From assembly GCF_001447785.1 (NCBI RefSeq), contig NW_015164247.1, forward strand, positions 154,600-218,599: a stretch of 64,000 bases of DNA, in the 5' to 3' direction. The notes beneath the pieces were generated by a model. The model was not told the DNA's origin. It made no database searches and was given only the letters and a program-made list of their open reading frames with translations. Source of the stretch: Gekko japonicus (taxonomy: Eukaryota). Below, piece by piece: positions 1-55,062 of this stretch (position 1 is the stretch's first letter; every line of letters begins with the position of its first letter). The position numbers and the translations under genes are program-made.

Positions 1-2642
1 CAACAAGGTTAACATGAGGATCACTAAAAACCTGCCTTACTGGCTTAATGTAAAGAGTACTGCACTCTCAACATTTTTTAACACAGTACATACAGTACCT
101 GTTACAGAGTGAAGTTATTTTTTCTTTGCCACTCCCTCAAATGGCTCATGCAAATACATTGATCCCCCCCCAACCACGGTAATACATTGGTTCTGTACCC
201 GTATCGTTTACACAGCAGGGGACAAGAGTAAATAATATCTTATGACAATCCTGGAATACAGTCTGCTGTTTGCACAGAATGCAAATCAAGTGAATCACAG
301 CAGACATCTCAAAATGGATGCAAAGGAGATTACTTAAGAAAGTGAGCCATGCCACATTGCAAGTGAAGGAACAAGATAGAATATACAGACAAAAATTAAC
401 CATGTGAAATGTTTAAATATTTTTGCAGACAGACAAAGGGAGAGATTAGTTGATGGATGTGAACTGTTTTTCTTGCACAGCAGTACCTTGGCGTGCACTC
501 TCTCTCACTGCACACATTAACCTCTCTTTCCCAAACACACACTACACAGATAGCAACACTCTTCCCTTGTTCCCACAGTCATATGACACACCCACACATT
601 TATCTCCCTTCCCATGCCTTCACTCAAATATACCGACAGCTGCACCCTCCCTTCCCTGTCACACATAGCATCAGTGACACCAGTATCCATCCTTACTTCT
701 TCGTCAAACACACAATCTTCTTCCCCTCTCCTTCACCTACTGGCTCCTGAAAGGACACTCGGTCTGGAGATGCCTCTCTCCCCCTTTTAGGACAAGGCTC
801 CACCCTGTAAAGTTCAACCTGCCAGTCACACACGTGCTGCATTAGACAGAACTTCCCCTTTTGATTTCTAACCTCAGAAACAGCTGCACAGGAAAGCCAA
901 TACCTTTCCACTTAAAATGACGTTCTGGACCTCATAACTTTAGAGATACACAGCAGATTTTCACCAAACCAATGAGAGGTAGACCACTACAGTGTCACTG
1001 AATTCCGATTATAATCTAAATCAGTAAACAGAGAAACTTAAGGAAAGAACAGTTGCAAACAAGGAAACATTTGCTATAATTCAGCCATTTACCAAAACCT
1101 TTTAAAAAACAAAATCTGTCCAATTATACCCCTCCCCAGGCAACTCTTTTGTACCAAATTTGATACTGATAGGACATATTCATTATAAGCAATAGAATAT
1201 TCAGGCTGTGTAATGACAGGACATTAGAAAAACCAGCTGGCTTCATTAATACAGCTGCTCTTCCAGCTGCATAATTAATGTAAATAATGTATTTCAACAA
1301 GAGTGAGAGCTCCTTAATGCAATCACTTGACAAGTGATGGTTTTATTAATTTCTATTTCATGCTTAGAAGCATGACATTTCAGAAAAAGTAATATCATGC
1401 TGTGCCAAATTTTCATGAGCAAACATTCCAAGACCAACAAAGCAGCTTTTGCGAGCTTTGAAATGTTCTCTAAGAGTCAACATAAAGCCACATCATAGTA
1501 AAGGCAGAATGTATTGTCCTCAGTCTGAAATTCTCCATAGGCCTCTTGACGACTTCACAGCAAATATAGCTACATGATGAACAGAAATCATGAAAACAAA
1601 TCTGAATGAGAGCAATGCTTCTTATCTTCACTCTTCACTGTAATACAACCCTTAGAATTATCAGAATACTTCCGAACCAGGCCCATAGGTAGGATTTGGG
1701 GGCGGGGCTTTAAAATTTTTAAGGGGGCTTGGGTCTAATGTCCTCCTTACACATACAAAGCTCACGAGGCATAAAAACCCACCCTCCAGTCCTTGCTCCA
1801 ATGAACACCAAGCTTCACTGAGACTTGGGCTGCGAGGCGGGGAAGGATGTAAGGAGGGCTGTGGCATGTCATGCAGGATCAGGGTGCAGTGGTCATTTCC
1901 CTGGGATGCTGCAGGGGTGCAGAGCCAAGAGGATGCATGCTCTTCCAAGCTCTCCTGCTTCTCCTCCTCCGTGCTTGCCTTGCAAGACCAGCCGTCCTCC
2001 ACCCAAGTGAAATGCTGGGAGAAGGAGGATGAGGGAAACCCCCCCCCTTGGAAGTCTCTGGGTCTCACTGTAGCTGAATAGCTTGGCTGTGATTTCTGGA
2101 GGGGGTGGGATTCCGTTCCCTAGTGGCTCAAGCCACAAGCCAAGCCCCAGCTTCAAAGAAGGGGAAAAAAGGTTGGGCGTGGGAAATGAGAAGTTGGGGA
2201 CGGTGGAGGGAGGGCGGTCCTGGCTTCTTCTCTCTGCGAGGCTTCTCAGCTGTGCTATAGGAGTGTGGCTTGCCACAGGGGCATGTGCCTTTAAAAATGT
2301 TTTTAAAAGGCAAAAAAGGGTTTTTCGGGGGAAATCTTGCGGGGCTGTCACACCTGCATCTCGACAACCTTGATATAATCATCATGGATATGTTGTGTGT
2401 GTTTTTTTAAAAAAATAAAGGGTTTATGTCCCACAGTAATGATAAACTATCCCAACTTCTAAAGCAATTGCCCACTTTCCTGGAACACGAGACACGTGTC
2501 ATAAGGAACAGTGCTCCGAAGAGCCACAGGTGGCATAATGAAGAGCCACATGTAGCTTCCAAGCTCCTGAGTATGATTGTGTTAGATCACTTGAGGATAG
2601 GGACACATTTTTAAAGCCTGGTACTTTAAAATTATATTTATA

Positions 2643-4677
2643 CTAGCAGTAAAGCCCGTTGTGGAAATAAATACAACGGGATCTAGAAAGAGGCTCTGGG
2701 GGAGTACTCTGGCTTTGGGCAAACAGTGTCATTTTGCTGTGGTGACCTCAGCAGGGTATAATGGCAGAGTCCACTGTTTTCTCCAGAGGAACTGATCTCT
2801 GCTCCCTGAAGAGCAGTTGTAATTTTGAGTGATCTGTAGCCCTCACCTGGAGATTGGCAACAATTGTTACCCAGGATGAAATGGCTGGTTTGGAGGGTGG
2901 AGTCTATGGCGTTGTACCTGTCTGATGTCCCACCCCTCCGCAAACCCCACCCTTTCCAGGCTCCACCCCTCAAATCCCCAGGAATTTGCCAGCCTGGAGT
3001 TGGCAACCCCATCTCCTTTGCAGGTAACCATCAACCTACCATTATCTGCCCCTTTGACTTCAGCTGAATTCCGCTCTCCCTTCTGCAGAGCAATTGTAAT
3101 TTTGAGTGGTCTCCAGCCCTCACCTGGAGATTGGCAACAATGGTTCCCCATGATGGACTGAGTGGTTTGGAGGGTGGAGTCTATGGCATTGTACCTGTCT
3201 GAGGTCCCACCCCTCCTCAAACCTCACCCTCTTCAGGCTCCATCCCTCAAATCTCCAGGAATTTCCCATCGGGAGTTGGCAACCCTATCAGGATTGGCCC
3301 CAATATGTTTTCTCCCAAAGGCCAAAGTAGGTGACTGGACCAAACTAAGTTGCCTACCATCAGGCACTGAGGGGAAAGTAGGGTTGCCAGCTATAAGGAG
3401 GGAAATACCTGGAGTTTTGGTGGGTGGATTCTGTAGAGGGCAGAATTGGGGGGGGGCGGAAGGACTCAGCAGGTATAATGTCATAGGGTCTACCCTCCAA
3501 AGCAGCCATTTTCTGAGTTTGAGGTGTGGAATGCAGTGAAGTCCAATCAGCTTCCATATGCAAAAGACCTTGAAGGTTCCATATGCAACTGACATTCCAA
3601 CTGCCTTGCGGGGAGGGGGGTGAGTTTGAGGTGTGGAATGCAGTGAAGTCCAATCAGCTTCCATATGCAAAAGACCTTGAAGGTTCCATATGCAACTGAC
3701 ATTCCAACTGCCTTGCGGGGAGGGGGGTGAGTTTGAGGTGTGGAATGCAGTGAAGTCCAATCAGCTTCCATATGCAAAAGACCTTGAAGGTTCCATATGC
3801 AACTGACATTCCAACTGCCTTGCGGGGAGGGGGGTGAGTTTGAGGTGTGGAATGCAGTGAAGTCCAATCAGCTTCCATATGCAAAAGACCTTGAAGGTTC
3901 CATATGCAACTGACATTCCAACTGCCTTGCGGGGAGGGGGGTGAGTTTGAGGTGTGGAATGCAGTGAAGTCCAATCAGCTTCCATATGCAAAAGACCTTG
4001 AAGGTTCCATATGCAACTGACATTCCAACTGCCTTGCGGGGAGGGGGGTGAGTTTGAGGTGTGGAATGCAGTGAAGTCCAATCAGCTTCCATATGCAAAA
4101 GACCTTGAAGGTTCCATATGCAACTGACATTCCAACTGCCTTGCGGGGAGGGGGGTGAGTTTGAGGTGTGGAATGCAGTGAAGTCCAATCAGCTTCCATA
4201 TGCAAAAGACCTTGAAGGTTCCATATGCAACTGACATTCCAACTGCCTTGCGGGGAGGGGGGTGAGTTTGAGGTGTGGAATGCAGTGAAGTCCAATCAGC
4301 TTCCATATGCAAAAGACCTTGAAGGTTCCATATGCAACTGACATTCCAACTGCCTTGCGGGGAGGGGGGTGAGTTTGAGGTGTGGAATGCAGTGAAGTCC
4401 AATCAGCTTCCATATGCAAAAGTCCAATCAGGTTCCATATGCAACTGACATTCCAACTGCCTTGCGGGGAGGGGGGTGAGTTTGAGGTGTGGAATGCAGT
4501 GAAGTCCAATCAGCTTCCATATGCAAAAGACCTTGGAACGCTGGGCGGGACTGCACAAAGCAGCCAGTCAACCCAGCCAGTGTCTTCTGAGTGGCAGTTT
4601 TTCCGGCCTAACACTAAAGGGGCCAAATTTAGAATGTTCATATAGAATGTTCTTACTCAATTATATATAAGGAGAGA
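2643..4677 (-). mobile_element. Non-autonomous Helitron, long copy (2035 bp) with internal tandem array and MITE fragments
   Basis: Minus strand starts A|TCTCTCCTTATATATAATTGA (4677) and ends with hairpin CCCGTTGT-n10-ACAACGGG, 8 nt, CTAG|T (2643). No TSD, inserted in AT. Both ends match the copy at 49623-50010. Confidence 0.85.
3514..4535. repeat. 107-bp tandem repeat, about 9.5 near-identical copies
   Basis: Unit TGAGTTTGAGGTGTGGAATGCAGTGAAGTCCAATCAGCTTCCATATGCAAAAGACC...; unit starts at 3514, 3621, 3728 ... 4477; explains the serial 106-aa ORFs. Confidence 0.97.
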
Positions 4678-4824
4678 TTCTATAGAACAGTGAGCCATAT
4701 CTTGATATTACAGGAGTATGATTCTACAAGCAGCAAATGTACAATTTATATATTATTAGCAGTACTATGATTTGCCAGTCGAAATGTTTCTAATTACTCC
4801 TGGTTTCTCCAATAAGTCTCCAGG

Positions 4825-5101
4825 AGCCAGTTTGGTGTAGTGGTTAAGTGAACAAACTCTAATCTGGGAGAACCGGGTTTGATTCCCCACTCCTCCACTT
4901 GCAGCTGCTAGATGGCCTTGGGCAAGCCATAGTTCTGTCAGGGCTGTTCTCTCAAGGGCAGCTCTGGAAAGAGCTCTCTCAGTCCCACCTACCTCACAGG
5001 ATGTCTGTTTTGGGAAGGGGAAGGGGAAGGAGTTTGTAAGCCGCTCTAAGACTCCAAGTGAAGGGCGGGATATTAATCCAATCTCCTCCTCCTCTTCTTC
5101 T
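4825..5101 (+). mobile_element. tRNA-derived SINE (Squam3-like); further copies 14524-14790, 22247-22476, 60765-61035 (+), 52598-53050 and 55419-56071 (-)
   Basis: TGGTGTAGTGGTTAAG A-box, GGTTTGATTCC B-box, conserved body, (TCT)n tail; multiple mutually similar copies. Confidence 0.8.
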
Positions 5102-8100
5102 TTTGCTTATTCTAAATCTCTAAAAAAATAGGACTTGCTGAAAAATTTAGAGAATAATTCAGACAATAATGACAAAAATTGATGTCTCTAGCTTGAAAAA
5201 CTGTGGCAACTGTAGTCATCTCCAGCCTATACCCTAGAGTTCTTGAGATACAATATATTATTTTGTCCATTTTAAAAGGAAAACTGGCAGCCTTTATATG
5301 CTACTATAAACTATCTTCTAATTGTTTCAGGGGGTAGCTGTGTTGGTCTGCAGTAGAACGGTTAGATTCAAGTTCAGCACCATCTTAGAGACCAGCAAGA
5401 TTTTGGGGGTGTAAGCAAAAGCTCTGTTCATCAGGGATCTGACAAAGGGAGATTTGACTTTTGAAAGTTCTCTTTTGAAAGAAAGTCAGTTTCAGCTGGA
5501 GTTGAATCTATCTATCTTTTGACTGACTACAGAGCAGGCACATTAATCATTTCACACATCTTAAGACATCACAGTTGCACAGCGTACTTCATTCATAAAA
5601 CAAGAAAATCAATTATATTCAAGTATTTAAAGTAGAACAATATTTTTTCTCAGAAGACAGCCAACTATACAGAACATTTAATTCTGCAAAAAAGCATAGG
5701 CAGGGAAATTTACTGTTTCCATTTTAAAAACCCGGATTCCACTTTCTGTATAGATTAGAGCAGTGGTTCTTAACTTTTACTGCCTACGAAATACACAACA
5801 TTATCACCAAACACATCCCCCTAAGTTTTAAGCAAACAATCTGAATGTATAAACAGCACTCCAGACAAAGCACCTTTACTTAATATACTTATTTATCTAA
5901 AATGTTTTTAAGACCACCTTTCTTCCAACACAGGTAAGACTCTAGGTGGGTAATAACATACACATTTTTAAAAATTAAATTATTAAATCAATATAACAAA
6001 TATTACATTCTTAAAAAGTATAAAGCCAGGAAGAAAAAAAGATAGGTCTCTAAACACCAAGCATATCTCCAAACATTCTCCCAAATTATTCCGTTTTAAG
6101 GTGTCTCTGAAAGGTTTCTCACATTCTGCAGCAAACGGCTCCAGAACACCAAAAAAAGTCCTTGTCCAGGCAGCATGTAAAACGGGAGGGTCAGTAGAGA
6201 AGGCCTTGGTGGGAAAATAGGAGTTTCATGGAATACACTGATCTCTGGCATACATTCAATAGACTGGTGTGCCTGATGGCCATAAACCAACTCCCAAGTG
6301 TTAAGTTTAGTTCCTATTTGACGTATGTCACTTTTAAAGAAATGCCACTTTTAAAGAAATGTTATCCTTAGGGCAGAAGGAACAGTGTCAAAGAACTCTC
6401 TCCTGCCAACTGTCAGAATCCATTGCAAGTGGGAAGACGGAGTTACGTGAAATGCCAAATACTCCCCCCCCCCAAGTCTTGAATGCCCCTCAAACTGACT
6501 GCATGGATTATGGCCCTCAATAAGAATCTCTAGATTACAGACAGTGCGATAAGGCATGATTTGTGGGTAAAACTCAACAAGAGAAGCCCTGACCTGGATA
6601 GTCCAGGCAAGCCCAATCTCATCACTCTAAGCAGGGTCAACTCTGGCAAGTACTTGGATGGGAGAACTCCTTGACATACCAGAGGTGGGAGGCGGGGGCA
6701 GGCTTTATTCAGCCACCTCTCTGAATATCCTCCAGGCCTCCAGTAGGGGTCAATCACCAGAGGTCGCCATGACTTCCAGATGCACACACACCACATATTT
6801 TAAAAATACCACCAAAAAAGAGAGAGAAGTAGGAGAAGCTACTCAGTGAAAATTATAAAAGAACTAATGGGGAAGGATTCATCATGCCTTTGGAACATCC
6901 AGATTAAGCACTTGTTGGCCAAGATGAAGGGTAGAAGTGTGTGTGCTTTGGCTTCTCACATTCCAGTTGGTGCACATTCATTACCAGAAGGACTCCACAA
7001 GACCAGAGTCATCTGTACAACAACTAAAATTCACAAATCCTTGAAAAACAAATTGATTCCCTGTAACTGGTGGTCTCCAAGAAATCATCTGCCCAATCAT
7101 ACATATAGGAGTTCCATGACAGCACAGAAAGAACTCCGTAAAGTTTTAAAAGACTAACTCAGAAACTGACATTCAAATCCCCTCCTCCATAGAAAGTATT
7201 GCTTTCTATGCATGCCCTCAGGAAAGCCGCGAGCACTTTTTGCTGAGTTCCTTCAGACCACTGCAGATAGCTCTCCTGAATGTGGTCAGAGAGAATCCAG
7301 CAGAAAAAAAGTAGGGCAGGTTCTACCAATCGAGCAACAACAACTGCAGGCAAGCAACCTGGGTTTTTTCCCTTCTTAGTCTCTGTACAGTCCTACAACT
7401 GAAGTATTAGGAAGGTGAAACACCTGAAGGTAGGTGCTAGCATTGCCTCAACAAACAGGCAGACCACATAGCTCGAGCATACACAGCTAGATAAGACTGT
7501 TGCTCAGACAAAGGCCTGTATGGGAGTTGGAAACATGTATTTCCAGCATCAGAAGAATTGTGGGCAAATTTCATCAGGGAGCCCGGAAAAAGAGACAAAC
7601 TCCATGTGTATGGAAATCTTGAGGAACTAAATTCATATTCCTGTGGGAATCAGTTTGAGACTCTGGATTCATGCACTTACAGAGAGCTGTGTCTAAGAAA
7701 ATTTAATAAACATAATCACAATGTTGACATCTTAATCCTAAACAACATTACTTTCCAGTACTACAAACATTACTGAGTGTGAATGTTTCCCATAATCACA
7801 TACAAGTGCTAAGTAATGAATGCATATTCCATGTCACTGAGGCACCACATATTCTGTTTCAGCTGAAATAAACGACTATTGCATTGTGCAATGCAAATCG
7901 TAACCATTAGCATACAAATAGGATAATTAAAGTCAAATGATAATTAGAAGATATGAAAAAGTTATTTTCAAACAACAAACATGACTAGCAATTTTGCTGG
8001 GCCCAGGAAGGGGAGAAAAGCATTTTAGTGCTATTGAGCAACTACAGGATAGCTGCATTCCTCCCACTCGCATTAGTATCAGGTAGCATCTCCTGCGGTT

Positions 8101-8227
8101 GCCAGATAGTGTCGTCAATGGGAGAGTGAAGAACAGTGACGACACTGAGCAACTGGTTCTGGTATTTCCCCATTAGAACAACTGCCATTAATATAATATT
8201 CTATGTTGCCCAATGGATGATCTAAGC

Positions 8228-8758
8228 CAGTGATTCTCAAGTTTTCATATTTGATGTCCCATCAATCACAAAACAGGAGGGCCTGGCGGGAGCTGGTCCA
8301 TGGGGTCACGAAGAGTCGGACTCGACTGTGCGACTGAACAACAACAATCACAAGAGCCTGGGTCCAGTCCCAGTATGATAGCCACAAACCTTTCACATTT
8401 CCAGAGAACAACATTTATATGTTTACAGGTATTCTGTTATTGTATTTATCACCTATGGTAAGTTTTAAGGACAAAAAAACCCGCAGTTGTACTGTTAGGA
8501 GTCATTTTTATTGTTATAGCTGCAAAACACAAACAAAAATAATCCCATTAGTCATTGAAAACCGCAATAAAAAAGGAAAAAGAAAATTGTAATAATATTG
8601 TTTTGTAAGTTTTACTGCTACGGTAACTGAAAAATGCAAGGATAGTAAATAAAAAATTGCAGTAGTGTCAGTGCGATTGAGGGTAATTGTAATTGTTGTG
8701 GGAACGCTGCATCATACCTACAGTGTTTCTACATTGCACTGCTGGCTGAGAACCACTG
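8228..8758. mobile_element. hAT-Charlie-like non-autonomous element with a nested 73-bp Bov-B 3' tip (8272-8344)
   Basis: TIRs CAGTGATTCTCA / TGAGAACCACTG; 8-bp TSD ATCTAAGC/ATATAAGC; Bov-B tip flanked by TSD CAATCACAA. Confidence 0.7.
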
Positions 8759-9766
8759 ATATAAGCAATGCAAAGTAAAAATAAGGCTTTAAAAATGAAA
8801 ACTTAGGCCTTGTGCAAGTGCGACACTCCTGGGTCTGTAATGACAGAAGTAACTGGACATGTCCAAAGCACAAAACATTTCTTCCTGTGTCTTCTTTCTT
8901 CTGGATGGCACATTCTTTAATAATCTTAAGAAGTTAGGCATTATTGCAGCAACATTAAAACAACTAGGGCTCTACCACAGGCCCCTGCTTCTTCTGCCAT
9001 TTATAACAAAAATCAGATGGACTGTTATGAAAAGAAATGGGTCTACCCAAGCTGGAATGCTCTCCTTACCCTTGCTCCCCTTCCAGCACCTACTAATGAT
9101 GTACTTGTCTGACCAGGCTTTCTGCTGAATCTCCCCCCACTTTAAGCTGCTTTGGGTCTCCACTGGGGAAGTAATTTAATAAATTACTATTGTCTATTAT
9201 TTGTTTGCTCTACTGTGTTCTGCTGCTTCTCTGGTGCATGTTTTAGTTTCAATTCTGCTCTACTGTTCCACGTGCTTTATTTTAGTTCTCTGCTTTTGAA
9301 AAATATGGTTTGTATGGATTTGTTGGAAGTCTGGTCTCCTACTGCTTTTACTTTGCTTCTTCAGCTGACTCTTCAGAATGGTTTTTGCTGCTTATAATGT
9401 GATAATATTGTTGATTTTATGCTTGGGATGGTGGTGTTGACCTTTATTTATTTATGTTATTTATGGCATTGTTAACTTAAGAGTGTGATTTGTTGTGAGT
9501 TGCCTCGAGAGCCTTCTGGATGAAGGGCAAGATTTTAAAAAAATGGTTTCAATAAATAAAATTAATTGAAAGGAAGCATGTGGTTCTCCCAAGCAGACAC
9601 CCATCCAGGGTCCAACCAAACTGGCTTAAGCTTCAGCAAGACTAATGCATCATGCCCCTTTACTGGAAAGAAGCAAACTAGTCTCATATATACATAATCA
9701 ATTCGCTCCTTTCTTTTAAACGAAAATGTAACCTGTATCATAACCAAGGTCAAAGAAGTAACCAAG

Positions 9767-9901
9767 TTACTTTTGGTGTATGTTGTAGTATAGTGTTTTG
9801 CTCCATAAAAGTGACAAAAGTTGTCATTACTCTTACTTTTGGTGTATTTTGTAGTATAGTGTTTTGCTCCATAAAAGTGACAAAATTTGTCATTACTCTT
9901 A
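9767..9901. repeat. 66-bp direct tandem duplication (2 copies)
   Basis: TTACTTTTGGTGTAT(G/T)TTGTAGTATAGTGTTTTGCTCCATAAAAGTGACAAAA(G/T)TTGTCATTACTC twice. Confidence 0.9.
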
Positions 9902-12900
9902 TAAATTCTTCCCCTAGCCAAAGACTACAGGTTCTCTTTTGACTGCTGCTGCCAAGTACATCTCTCTAAACCTGATCTGGATGTGTAGGTTTGACTATGT
10001 ACCACTATATTATGTTTATTTAGAATATTTTTATCCCATCTTTCCAAAAATCTTGCTTGAGGTGGCCCTCTCTGTGTTTTGGCTCACTTTCTGGTACTCT
10101 CATGAAGGAGAGTTAACATCTCCATCTACAGTGTGAAATAATTATGAGATGTTAAACTTGGCAGTTTTCCGTCTTTTATACCTAATTTTTTCAATAGTGG
10201 AAGTATTACCTTTGATACTCTAAATCAGGTTCAAGTATGCTTAGATAGTGTACAAAAATCAAAAGATGCCTGCTAATTACGGAGAATGCTGATAATCTGC
10301 CAGAGATTCAGTTAATGTTGAGATTATGGCATTACACTAGTGAATGCTGACAGTGACCATCAGGTGCCTGTCTTCGTTCACTGGTTATCATTCACCTGAT
10401 GCAATAAGAAATTCCCACTAATGGCCATATGCTGGATATTCACTGACTAGATAAAACACATTAGGCACTTGGCTAGTAATTACAGCTGACACCCTGCAAG
10501 AATACAGGCACAAACGCACCCTCTTCTTTCCTCTGAGAACTATAGCTCTCCACTGTATTACATGTATTGTAGTTTGACTACTACTGCCAACATCACCTGT
10601 TCTAGTCCCAAACTGGTTCAATGTGTGAAGAATCCACTTTATATCACTTACACAGTTTCATATCCACGTGTTCAGTATGTCATACTAATTTTTTGATCCT
10701 AAATATGTAGTGTTGCGTATGCATGTGTTCTGTATGCCATACTAATCCTTTGATCCTAAATATTTGTGCTGTTCTAACCGGCTGCTGTAACAGTTCCATC
10801 CTAAAAGCCCTCTAAAATCCTCTCCATAACATTCTCAGCATTGAGAAAAATCCGTTCTGAAGATCCATAGAAGAATACCAGCCAAGAGCAGCCCCATCCC
10901 CATCTCAATCCCCAACCAGTTTCTGGCCTTTAGAATTTTACAGGCAACACCCTCTATAGCCACTCTACAAATTCCATTTCTCCTAAACGCTATGGTATAC
11001 CATAGCGCTTGCCCTCCAAAGCTGCTGTTTTCCTCTAGAGGAACTGATATCGGTAGCCTGGAGATCAGTTTTAATTCCCAGAGAATGCTAGGCCCCACCA
11101 CGATGTTGGCAGCCCTGAGTATGGCTTGGCTTCTTGCTGTGAAGAAGAGATAAAACAGTTCCATTTTCAGAACACTGTCGTCCTCAAGGTATCAACAGAC
11201 ATGCATCAAATTTCAATTATTGGCTGGAGAAACACCTTACCAATTTGGATACAGCTTTGAGCAAATCAGAGACCCAAGCTTCTTTTATATAGATTTAGAG
11301 AGATAAAATGAAGCCTGTATTCTGCAAGCATCAATATATATTGCTGGCAGCTACTGAAAGTGTTCCATCCTCTAAAATCAACTCTGATCCAAGTAAGTAA
11401 AGAGACAGCAGAAGTCAATGGCAAACCACCTCTGCTCATCTCTTGCCTTGAACACCCTGCAGACGGCGTCACCCTGAGTTGGCTGCAACTTGACAGCATG
11501 TTAATGATGAGTGACACAGTCTTCATGCACAATTATTCAAAAACCTGCCACACAACTGGTATGCTATCCTGAGCAGGGTCTAAGCACTGAAAACAGAGTA
11601 AAGGACAGGATACACTTTACTGGAGTCTGGCCAGCTCAGGCAGTATCTCCACAACAATGAGCAAAAATAGATCATACTGTGGAGATTAATGGAAATGTAT
11701 TTCCCTCTGTCTATTACACATACTTACAGGGGGTGTCTGGATCAAGTTATGTTCTGAGGTGTATTGCTGGTACAACTCAACCCCTTCTCTAGAACAGAGT
11801 GTGAGTGCTTGTGCAATCAAACCAGCACTTGTAGTTTAAGAAACAGATTTGTACTTTCCTATATGACATGCTTTCTCAAGAACTACCTGTCTTAGAGCTC
11901 CTTGTGCATAGGCAGGAAAAGAGAAAAAGCATCACAGTTATCAACAGCATCACTCCAAGTGATAGCGGAAGCTAATAACAGCAAGCTTTGTTGGACTCTT
12001 CTTCAGGTTAGATGTTAAAAAAAAGCAAGAGGAGAATGTTAGAGACGCTCCAGTAGGGGACACCATATAATTTTAGAAGTACAGAAAATGGCATTTCAGA
12101 ATTAAAACAACCTTTATTTCATTGCTTATGAGACTGTAGATATGGGCACGATTGTGGTACATATTACAAGGCTTTAACAAATGATACTTTGTATGAGTTA
12201 TTCAGTATAAGAGCCAGACTTCGTTGACAGCTTGGTTGAAGAGACCATTAATCACAGTGCTCCCTTTTCAGAAAGTATACCCTAGTAGTTGTGTCTCCTA
12301 ATTCAAACATCCATTAATATCCTAGCATGTTTGGAAATACAGTAAGTATTTACTGTAGGTCTACAGAAGTAAAGTAACATTAGTAACTTACTATACAAAA
12401 TGCTGGTTAGTACAAACCATCAGAAAAAAGTTCAGAATATAATAATCTTTATAGTTCTGAAGAAAGTCACCCCCTTCTATACTATAAACCTTAGCTCACT
12501 ACAAATGAACAGTATCTGCCATCATTAGATATATCAAGCTACATAACCACATAACTCCTGTTCTAAACAAAGCTCTCTATTTTACAGCATACTATGTCAC
12601 GTGACCGACTTCTATAATAGATAAGATACCCCCAGCAGTATGAAATCGGTAATTCAGATGCTTTTTATTCCAACTGCTTTACTAATGACAGACTCCAACA
12701 GACTACTGAAAGGGAAAGCAGCACCTATAAGTATTAGTAGCTCATTTTCTCTTGATAAAAAACAATTACTGACATTCAGAAATATTTTCATTTTATTTAA
12801 GCAAGTCTTTGGCTATAACTGAAAAGGCATCTTTTTTTCCATAGCTACACATCTTATGATTAAAGTTTTAGCATGGGGGAAAAAAAGAAAAAGACCACAC

Positions 12901-19287: not shown

Positions 19288-20184
19288 CAGGGTTGCCACT
19301 TTCTGGAAAGTCAGGGAAATGAAAATAAGTCAGGGAAATGAAAATAAGTCAGGGAAATGAAAATAAGTCAGGGAAATGAAAATAAGTCAGGGAAATGAAA
19401 ATAAGTCAGGGAAATGAAAATAAGTCAGGGAAATGAAAATAAGTCAGGGAAACTGGTCTGAAGTCAGGGAAAGTCAGGGAAGTTGTGATTAAAATATATT
19501 CAAGCGGTGGACTTTTGACCTGCTGCTGCAAGAGCATGATCTGTTCTTGTGGCAACTGGAATAGAGAAGTAGCAAATACAAGTAGAACTTAATGATGCCC
19601 TTTCCCAACTATTTTAGATAGAATGTTTATATAGTTTTTAGTGTACCTTTAAAACAATAACAAAAATGTTATGTCATTTGTTAGCATTCAGAGTTTACTT
19701 GAATTGAAATTTGTATCTTGGTGTAATTTTTGGTGCAATTGCAAAACAGATGTTGCTGCAGTTAATGTTGAAAGAAGCTGATATTAAATCTCTTTGACAA
19801 ATATTTTTGCAGTTGAGACTTGTGTCGTTGTAGAGTGGAACCCTTACCTTGCATTAATGCAATATGACCAGTGTCCCCTCTAAGCAGAGTTAGTGTGAGC
19901 TAGCTCACAGTTTTTTAGCCTCCAGTTCACACATTCTTGTCTTAACCCACGAAGGAGGGCTCCTTAGCAAACTAATTTACGCAGTAGCCACATCGCTCGC
20001 TCACAACTCTCATGCCAGTAGCTCACAAAGTAGAATTTTTGCTCACAAGACTCCACAGCTTAGAGGGAGCATTGACCTATTCATTTTTTAACGTTGTTAT
20101 AATTGAATGGTGGTCAGGGAAATTGACAGATGTTGGTCAGGGAAAGTCAGGGAAATGAAAAATAAATTTTTAGTGGCAACCCTG
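19288..20184. mobile_element. TIR DNA transposon remnant with subterminal GTCAGGGAAA repeats and a nested MITE (19869-20074)
   Basis: TIRs CAGGGTTGCCACT / AGTGGCAACCCTG; GTCAGGGAAA motifs near both ends; no clear TSD. Confidence 0.65.
19308..19452. repeat. 19-bp perfect tandem repeat (AAGTCAGGGAAATGAAAAT) x ~7.6
   Basis: Read directly from the sequence. Confidence 0.95.

Positions 20185-20817: not shown

Positions 20818-40744
<19,927 letters not shown>

Positions 40745-47334: not shown

Positions 47335-55062
<7,728 letters not shown>

Follow-up and report, generated by a model that had tools for sequence, protein, structure and literature searches.

Canonical Helitrons are recognised by their TC...CTRR ends, a subterminal 3' hairpin, insertion between an A and a T (A|T) and the lack of a target-site duplication (TSD) (PMC12001565). 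The internal arrays of Helitrons and Helentrons are able to expand into satellite DNA, a process that has been reviewed (PMC12628747) and described in the Pacific oyster (PMC7492417), and Xenopus contains both Heli2Xen minisatellites and a few Heli1Xen1-derived arrays (PMC12001565). A previous reading of the gecko DNA described here, made from the letters alone (the sequence-only reading), had invoked Drosophila, in which Helitron-internal repeats have seeded satellites; this precedent is established and extends to oysters and Xenopus. The process is, therefore, already known from Drosophila, bivalves, plants and Xenopus, and the current picture is left unchanged by the present locus. In the literature searched, no paper on Helitron-borne arrays of squamates was found.

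Heli1Xen1 is a canonical Helitron family that has been identified in Xenopus, Lacertidae, Cordylidae, Bufonidae and Polypteridae (Li & Pollet 2025, PMC12001565). It has TC/CTAG ends, a TA-rich left end (TATATAAA), which is more variable than the right end, and a hairpin of the form CCCGTTA...TAACGGG (PMC12001565). Its non-autonomous copies number from hundreds to over 20,000 in Lacertidae and Cordylidae, and the tandem arrays derived from it are few (4/43 in X. laevis) (PMC12001565). Heli2Xen, a Helitron2 of Xenopus, has non-autonomous copies that are largely minisatellite (166 bp) and carries arrays at both ends of its autonomous copy (PMC12001565). In the Pacific oyster, Cg_HINE is an element of the Helentron type in which conserved flanking modules surround a central array of satellite-like monomers (140-180 bp, with a diversity of 8-21% within clusters); most of these arrays are short, few have at least five units, and related flanks hold differing internal content (PMC7492417). 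DINE-1 and DINE-TR1 of Drosophila are non-autonomous rolling-circle elements with central repeats that vary in number and are able to become satellite (cited in PMC12628747 and PMC7492417). They are of the Helentron/Helitron2 type, with subterminal inverted repeats and T-rich insertion sites.

Termini and insertion sites of the two elements

The window analysed here is a 64-kb stretch of Gekko japonicus DNA (GCF_001447785.1, contig NW_015164247.1, positions 154,600-218,599 of the forward strand) that contains no Ns. It harbours a long copy on the minus strand (2643-4677) and a short copy on the plus strand (49623-50010), separated by 45 kb and both non-coding, in which a 5' end, a body, a motif and a 3' end are colinear. 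The long copy starts with TCTCTCC... at 4677 (5' terminus TCTCTCCTTATATATAATTGA, 4657-4677, minus strand) after an A at 4678, and the short copy starts with TCCCTCC... at 49623 (5' terminus TCCCTCCTTATATATAATTGA, 49623-49643, plus strand) after an A at 49622. These first 21 nt are common to both copies with one mismatch. When up to three mismatches are allowed, the motif that they form is matched at exactly two places of the window, with none expected in shuffled sequences. Past this point, the 5' regions of both elements can be aligned only patchwise (in the long copy, the subterminal body at 4536-4656, minus strand), and the two copies represent subfamilies that have diverged from each other.

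The conserved 3' region occupies 2643-2737 (minus strand) in the long copy, where CTAG (2646-2643) is followed by a T at 2642, and 49915-50010 (plus strand) in the short copy, where CTAG (50007-50010) is followed by a T at 50011. The elements terminate in ...GATCCCGTTGTATTTATTTCCACAACGGGCTTTACTGCTAG (long copy, minus strand) and ...GATCCCGTTGTATTTATTTCCACAACGGGCCTTATTTCTAG (short copy, plus strand), and their 3' ends are 91.7% identical across 96 bp. Both contain the hairpin block CCCGTTGTATTTATTTCCACAACGGGC, found at 2680-2654 on the minus strand and at 49973-49999 on the plus strand, and nowhere else in the window even with three mismatches tolerated (none expected). In the long copy, this hairpin (2654-2680, minus strand) reads CCCGTTGT-n10-ACAACGGG; it has an 8-bp stem and a 10-nt loop, ends 12 nt before the end of the element, and folds as single-stranded DNA with z-scores of -4.0 and -4.4 for the two copies.

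No TSD was detected at either copy, the flanks having no direct repeat in common, and neither copy contains terminal inverted repeats or a poly-A tail. All the coordinates and features that the sequence-only reading had given for the two elements were found in place: the A|TC(T/C) start, a common 3' end of about 100 bp, a hairpin with a 10-nt loop followed by CTAG|T, and no TSD. When the joined flanks of each copy were compared with the window in search of paralogous empty sites, only a neighbouring SINE was matched. This tRNA-derived SINE (4824-5105; loose-end consensus GCCAGTTTGGTGTAGTGGTTAAG...) lies 146 bp from the 5' end of the long copy and exceeds every other repeat of the stretch in abundance by a wide margin, with a raw-read depth of about 55,000-68,000 compared with about 2 for unique DNA.

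The two elements, thus, present the traits of the canonical (Helitron1-type) class: a TC start, a CTRR end in the form of CTAG, a GC-rich hairpin at the usual distance of about 10-12 nt before the 3' end and, at the two insertions inspected, exact A|T integration with no TSD and no terminal inverted repeats; raw-read depth, taken for each end separately, also indicates a multi-copy family with conserved ends. Their likeness to Heli1Xen1 includes the TC start and CTAG end, a TA-rich left end (TTATATATAA here, TATATAAA there), a hairpin that opens with CCCGTT and closes with AACGGG, and the existence of thousands of short non-autonomous copies in lizards, and the greater depth of the 3' end than of the 5' end (see below) fits a variable left end. 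They differ in the hairpin stem, which has GT/AC here and A/T there. Membership of the gecko family in Heli1Xen1 is a lead, drawn from a comparison of the ends with the motifs quoted in PMC12001565.

Because of the TC...hairpin...CTAG arrangement, the A|T sites without TSD, the lack of terminal inverted repeats and poly-A, the recurring ends and the resemblance to a published family, both stretches are most probably copies of one large non-autonomous family of canonical (Helitron1-type) Helitrons, in which the internal array is specific to the lineage of the long copy. This agrees with the Helitron identity originally proposed. It is highly improbable that the ends come instead from some other interspersed repeat, be it a SINE, a MITE or a piece of a larger element, and that TC, CTAG and A|T are coincidental. 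Base-by-base inspection covers two copies, and neither an empty site nor an autonomous partner was seen, which would leave room for such an explanation, but target-site duplications, terminal inverted repeats and A-tails are all lacking, the distance between hairpin and CTAG is the canonical one, each of the two elements sits exactly between A and T, and the ends closely resemble those of a bona fide lizard Helitron family (Heli1Xen1).

The tandem array, the single motif and the MITE block

The long copy contains a tandem array at 3514-4535 (minus strand), to which Tandem Repeats Finder assigns a period of 107 bp, 9.6 copies and 99% matches, and which is composed of nine full units plus a partial unit of 51 bp. 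The periodicity of 107 bp is perfect, with zero deviations, over the 909 bp between 3514 and 4422, and units 2-9 are identical to one another. Unit 1 deviates only in its last nine nucleotides, five of which differ (TGATTGGAC replaces TTCAAGGTC), and the partial last unit ends after ...CCTCAAACTCA, where it is joined to other sequence at 3514. In the short copy, a single motif (49781-49878, plus strand), which aligns with the array unit at 88% identity and with one gap of 5 nt, occupies the same relative place in the same orientation, with no trace of a second unit. The near-perfect array of about 9.5 units of 107 bp and the single diverged motif of about 96 bp (49781-49876) reported by the sequence-only reading are, thus, confirmed with minor adjustments.

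Where the eight identical units adjoin, the junction GGAACC|TTCAAGGTC is a repeat of what lies immediately upstream of unit 1 (GTTCCAAGGTC), and the duplicated 107-bp segment extends from about 12 nt before the first TTGCATATGGAA to 2 nt past the second. This 12-nt repeat brackets the motif in both copies; it was considered as the direct junction of the duplication and rejected, its spacing being 82 nt and the period 107 nt. The junction has at most 1 nt of microhomology and, therefore, the mechanism of the first duplication is not evident from the sequence. The junction of unit 1 looks like a local duplication or conversion of 25 nt, judging from a Tandem Repeats Finder row at 4395-4444. If no homogenisation is acting, the zero differences in 909 bp would place the divergence among units below about 0.3% (Poisson bound), and the units would then be far younger than the 8-12% divergence between the two copies.

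An Rfam scan of 2300-5200 at E values up to 1 gave only sub-threshold chance matches to known RNAs, and no hammerhead or retrozyme signal was found in the unit. Each 107-bp unit holds TTTTGCAT, which matches seven of the eight positions of the octamer ATTTGCAT and is separated by 8 nt from a CCAAT box in inverted form (GATTGG). This pairing resembles that of a promoter and might possibly represent a captured regulatory fragment.

Between the array and the conserved 3' region, the long copy carries a cluster of MITE fragments in alternating orientation (2738-3513, minus strand), about 780 bp that are missing from the short copy. The fragments derive from one high-copy, MITE-like repeat of about 230 bp (ends GGGTTGCCAA...) and form one direct pair of 211 nt (85%) and three inverted pairs. 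A free copy of this MITE, also of about 230 bp and with ends GGGT(G/T)GCCAA...TGGCAACC, is located at about 51350-51580, a further fragment lies at 11025-11076, and there are thousands of copies in the genome. The junctions of the block are abrupt on both sides, with the truncated last unit at 3514 and with the Helitron 3' region near 2738. The rest of the cut unit is not resumed beyond the block, and the MITE itself is cut off at 3514, a point past which other genomic copies continue (loose ends at 3514 in contigs of two other organisms, B and C); neither joint, therefore, has the look that a clean nested insertion would give. Filler DNA or recombination may have replaced the body of the long copy, as these joints suggest. 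Both are on record for Helitrons, and the filler-DNA model has been discussed (PMC7492417). Bypass of the 3' end was also considered as a source of the block and rejected, no second internal hairpin-plus-CTAG being present.

With one and 9.6 units in its two copies, the gecko family shows a monomer number that varies within one element family, a behaviour like that of DINE-TR1 and Cg_HINE. Like DINE-1 and DINE-TR1, it is a non-autonomous rolling-circle element with central repeats of variable number; in contrast, it has Helitron1-type ends and A|T sites, and it is known with an array of 9.6 units and not with a long satellite block. It also shares with Cg_HINE the arrangement of conserved flanks around a monomer array and the presence of different content between related flanks, but its units are of 107 bp and identical. 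As in Heli2Xen, the host is a vertebrate and the repeats belong to a non-autonomous Helitron, although here there is one internal array in an element of the Helitron1 type.

Abundance and context in reads and contigs

Positions 1700-5600 of the window were used as a query against four runs: contigs (X1) and raw 100-nt reads (X21, about 1 in 100 of the run) of organism A, which is the species of the window; contigs of organism B (X6), a related one; and contigs of organism C (X8), 231 of which were placed. In the organism A reads, the summed depth of the unique left flank is about 1-3, while the 3' hairpin (place 2664) reaches 7,501, the conserved 3' region (place 2732) about 7,970 and the MITE block (2748-3533) about 4,000-12,000. 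The bin with the 5' end (4582-4712) has a depth of about 1,010, or about 1,400 after correction for the 96 element bases that it contains, so that the 3' end outnumbers the 5' end by a factor of 5-7, each end being counted on its own. The unit-bearing bins 3534-3664 and 4451-4581 have depths of about 800 and 2,700. Depth falls to 0 in the middle of the array (3796-4188), which indicates that reads fitting several units were assigned to one end of the array and that the depths there need to be summed. The relative abundances in the organism A contigs agree with those in the reads.

Both ends and the unit are, thus, each repeated hundreds to thousands of times, and the unit is of the same order of abundance as the 5' end, which would give each element about one unit or a few. 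The sequence-only reading had made its proposal depend on the termini recurring as a linked pair; the reads of the same species bear out recurrence for each end counted on its own. The 107-bp unit is likewise highly repeated, and it and its tandem junction also occur elsewhere. Depth in bin 3665-3795 is 69 and in 4189-4450 it is 140-180, compared with about 2 for unique DNA; on our reading of the placement rule, these values are estimated to represent reads that run from unit to unit in excess of one locus, that is, tandem copies elsewhere. With respect to stand-alone arrays of the monomer, depth reveals many further units elsewhere, and tandem junctions are present in the other data, as measures that carry neither context nor array length.

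In organism C, a contig of 171 nt (4508-4678, 11 differences) joins the 5' end, the body and the start of the unit, and another of 127 nt (3545-3671) spans the unit-unit junction with 0 differences. The other matching contigs of this organism differ by about 4-7%, unlike the identical one, which could mean that organism C is a close relative or that organism A DNA is present in that sample. In organism B, whose unique-flank contigs diverge from the window by 8-13%, the unit is abundant, as is the 3' end, and the 5' end is almost absent (word depth of 424 in bin 4582-4712 vs 504,880 in the next bin), suggesting that the left end is lineage-specific or that the unit is also carried in other contexts, either with other left ends or alone.

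These data bear on the reliability of the assembled array. An artefact of assembly in its length or perfection, with a wrong copy number or with unit differences erased by polishing, seems unlikely to a marked degree. A perfect identity over 909 bp is unusual, and the Logan contigs and 100-nt reads are too short to span the array and to give independent confirmation of the number of units; on the other hand, an array of 1 kb is within reach of any long-read assembly, unit 1 keeps its distinct 9-nt variant, the array junctions are defined and asymmetric on both sides, and unit-unit junctions are present in the independent data.

They also bear on an alternative origin, in which a tandem array existed beforehand, as part of an ancestral element or as a captured host satellite, the motif of the short copy would be a collapsed remnant, and the identity of the units would reflect ongoing homogenisation. 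Cases of tandem repeats captured by Helitrons are known (PMC12628747), the summed depth of the unit bins is far beyond that of one locus, with reads that enter a second unit (3665-3795), the identical 127-nt contig of organism C crosses a unit-unit junction, and organism B is rich in the unit without this 5' end. Nevertheless, the motif lies at the same position and orientation in two diverged subfamilies, within a homologous Helitron body, the similar depths of unit and 5' end fit one to few units per element and not a large satellite, and the short-copy motif has no second-unit trace. This origin is, thus, a minority possibility, to be taken more seriously than an assembly artefact.

Two organism A contigs (2460-2660 and 4653-4846) match the assembly exactly over both boundaries of the long element, which they enter by 18 and 25 nt (the bridging threshold was 31 nt). 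No empty-site joint over 2642/4678 was found among the joints listed, with organism B contigs reaching only to 2469 on the left flank. Metagenome, viral and prokaryote genome contigs were scanned for exact patterns of the 3' terminus and of the unit core, and neither was found, which gives no hint of a viral vector and no extra flanked copies.

Origin of the array

In the reading preferred here, a motif of about 100 bp would have been part of the family body, and the non-autonomous copies would depend for their mobilisation on a RepHel protein supplied in trans from another locus. This protein would recognise a 5' end with TC and a 3' end with hairpin plus CTAG, and would insert the copies between A and T without target duplication. 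A segment of 107 bp with the motif would have been duplicated in tandem in the lineage leading to the long copy, through unequal exchange, slippage or aberrant rolling-circle copying, recently enough for 909 bp to keep perfect periodicity. From two units on, unequal exchange or slippage could readily add more, and this expansion may have taken place either at the present locus or in a master copy prior to insertion. In a separate event, the downstream body would have been swapped for MITE fragments, as filler DNA or by recombination, cutting the last unit. We infer the direction from single motif to array, as well as the mechanism of expansion, its timing and its order relative to insertion.

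The sequence-only reading had presented the short copy as a single-unit sibling of an element caught turning an internal motif into a satellite. The states of one and 9.6 units at the same position sustain this image in part, but the 5' bodies are diverged and about 780 bp of MITE block separate the two copies further. In the same way, one family in which both states are present agrees with the proposal of a tandem-repeat nursery, although the direction of change is a matter of interpretation and the unit is also found elsewhere.

A bolder and doubtful proposal is that a Heli1Xen1-like subfamily of squamates, from a family possibly acquired horizontally, is now spreading and expanding a 107-bp minisatellite, in young arrays dispersed in introns and variable in length between individuals. 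If so, it would be the first birth of a satellite from a Helitron1-type element in an amniote. The locus offers one-unit and ten-unit states of one motif in a single lizard-type Helitron family with exact coordinates, potentially a clean vertebrate case of transposon-internal motifs becoming dispersed minisatellites, and the array is a candidate length-variable marker within an intron. Its main practical value lies in the repeat annotation of this genome, which has to deal with a family that numbers thousands of copies, varies at its left end and carries MITE fragments as well as internal arrays.

Other repeats in the window include a perfect 19-bp tandem repeat of 7.6 copies (19308-19452, AAGTCAGGGAAATGAAAAT, 100% matches) and tandem duplications at 33037-33125 (42 bp, 2.1 copies, 100%) and 9767-9901 (66 bp, 2.0 copies, 97%). 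The segment 16001-18000 has a GC content of 0.62, compared with about 0.40 around it, and resembles a CpG island or a promoter.
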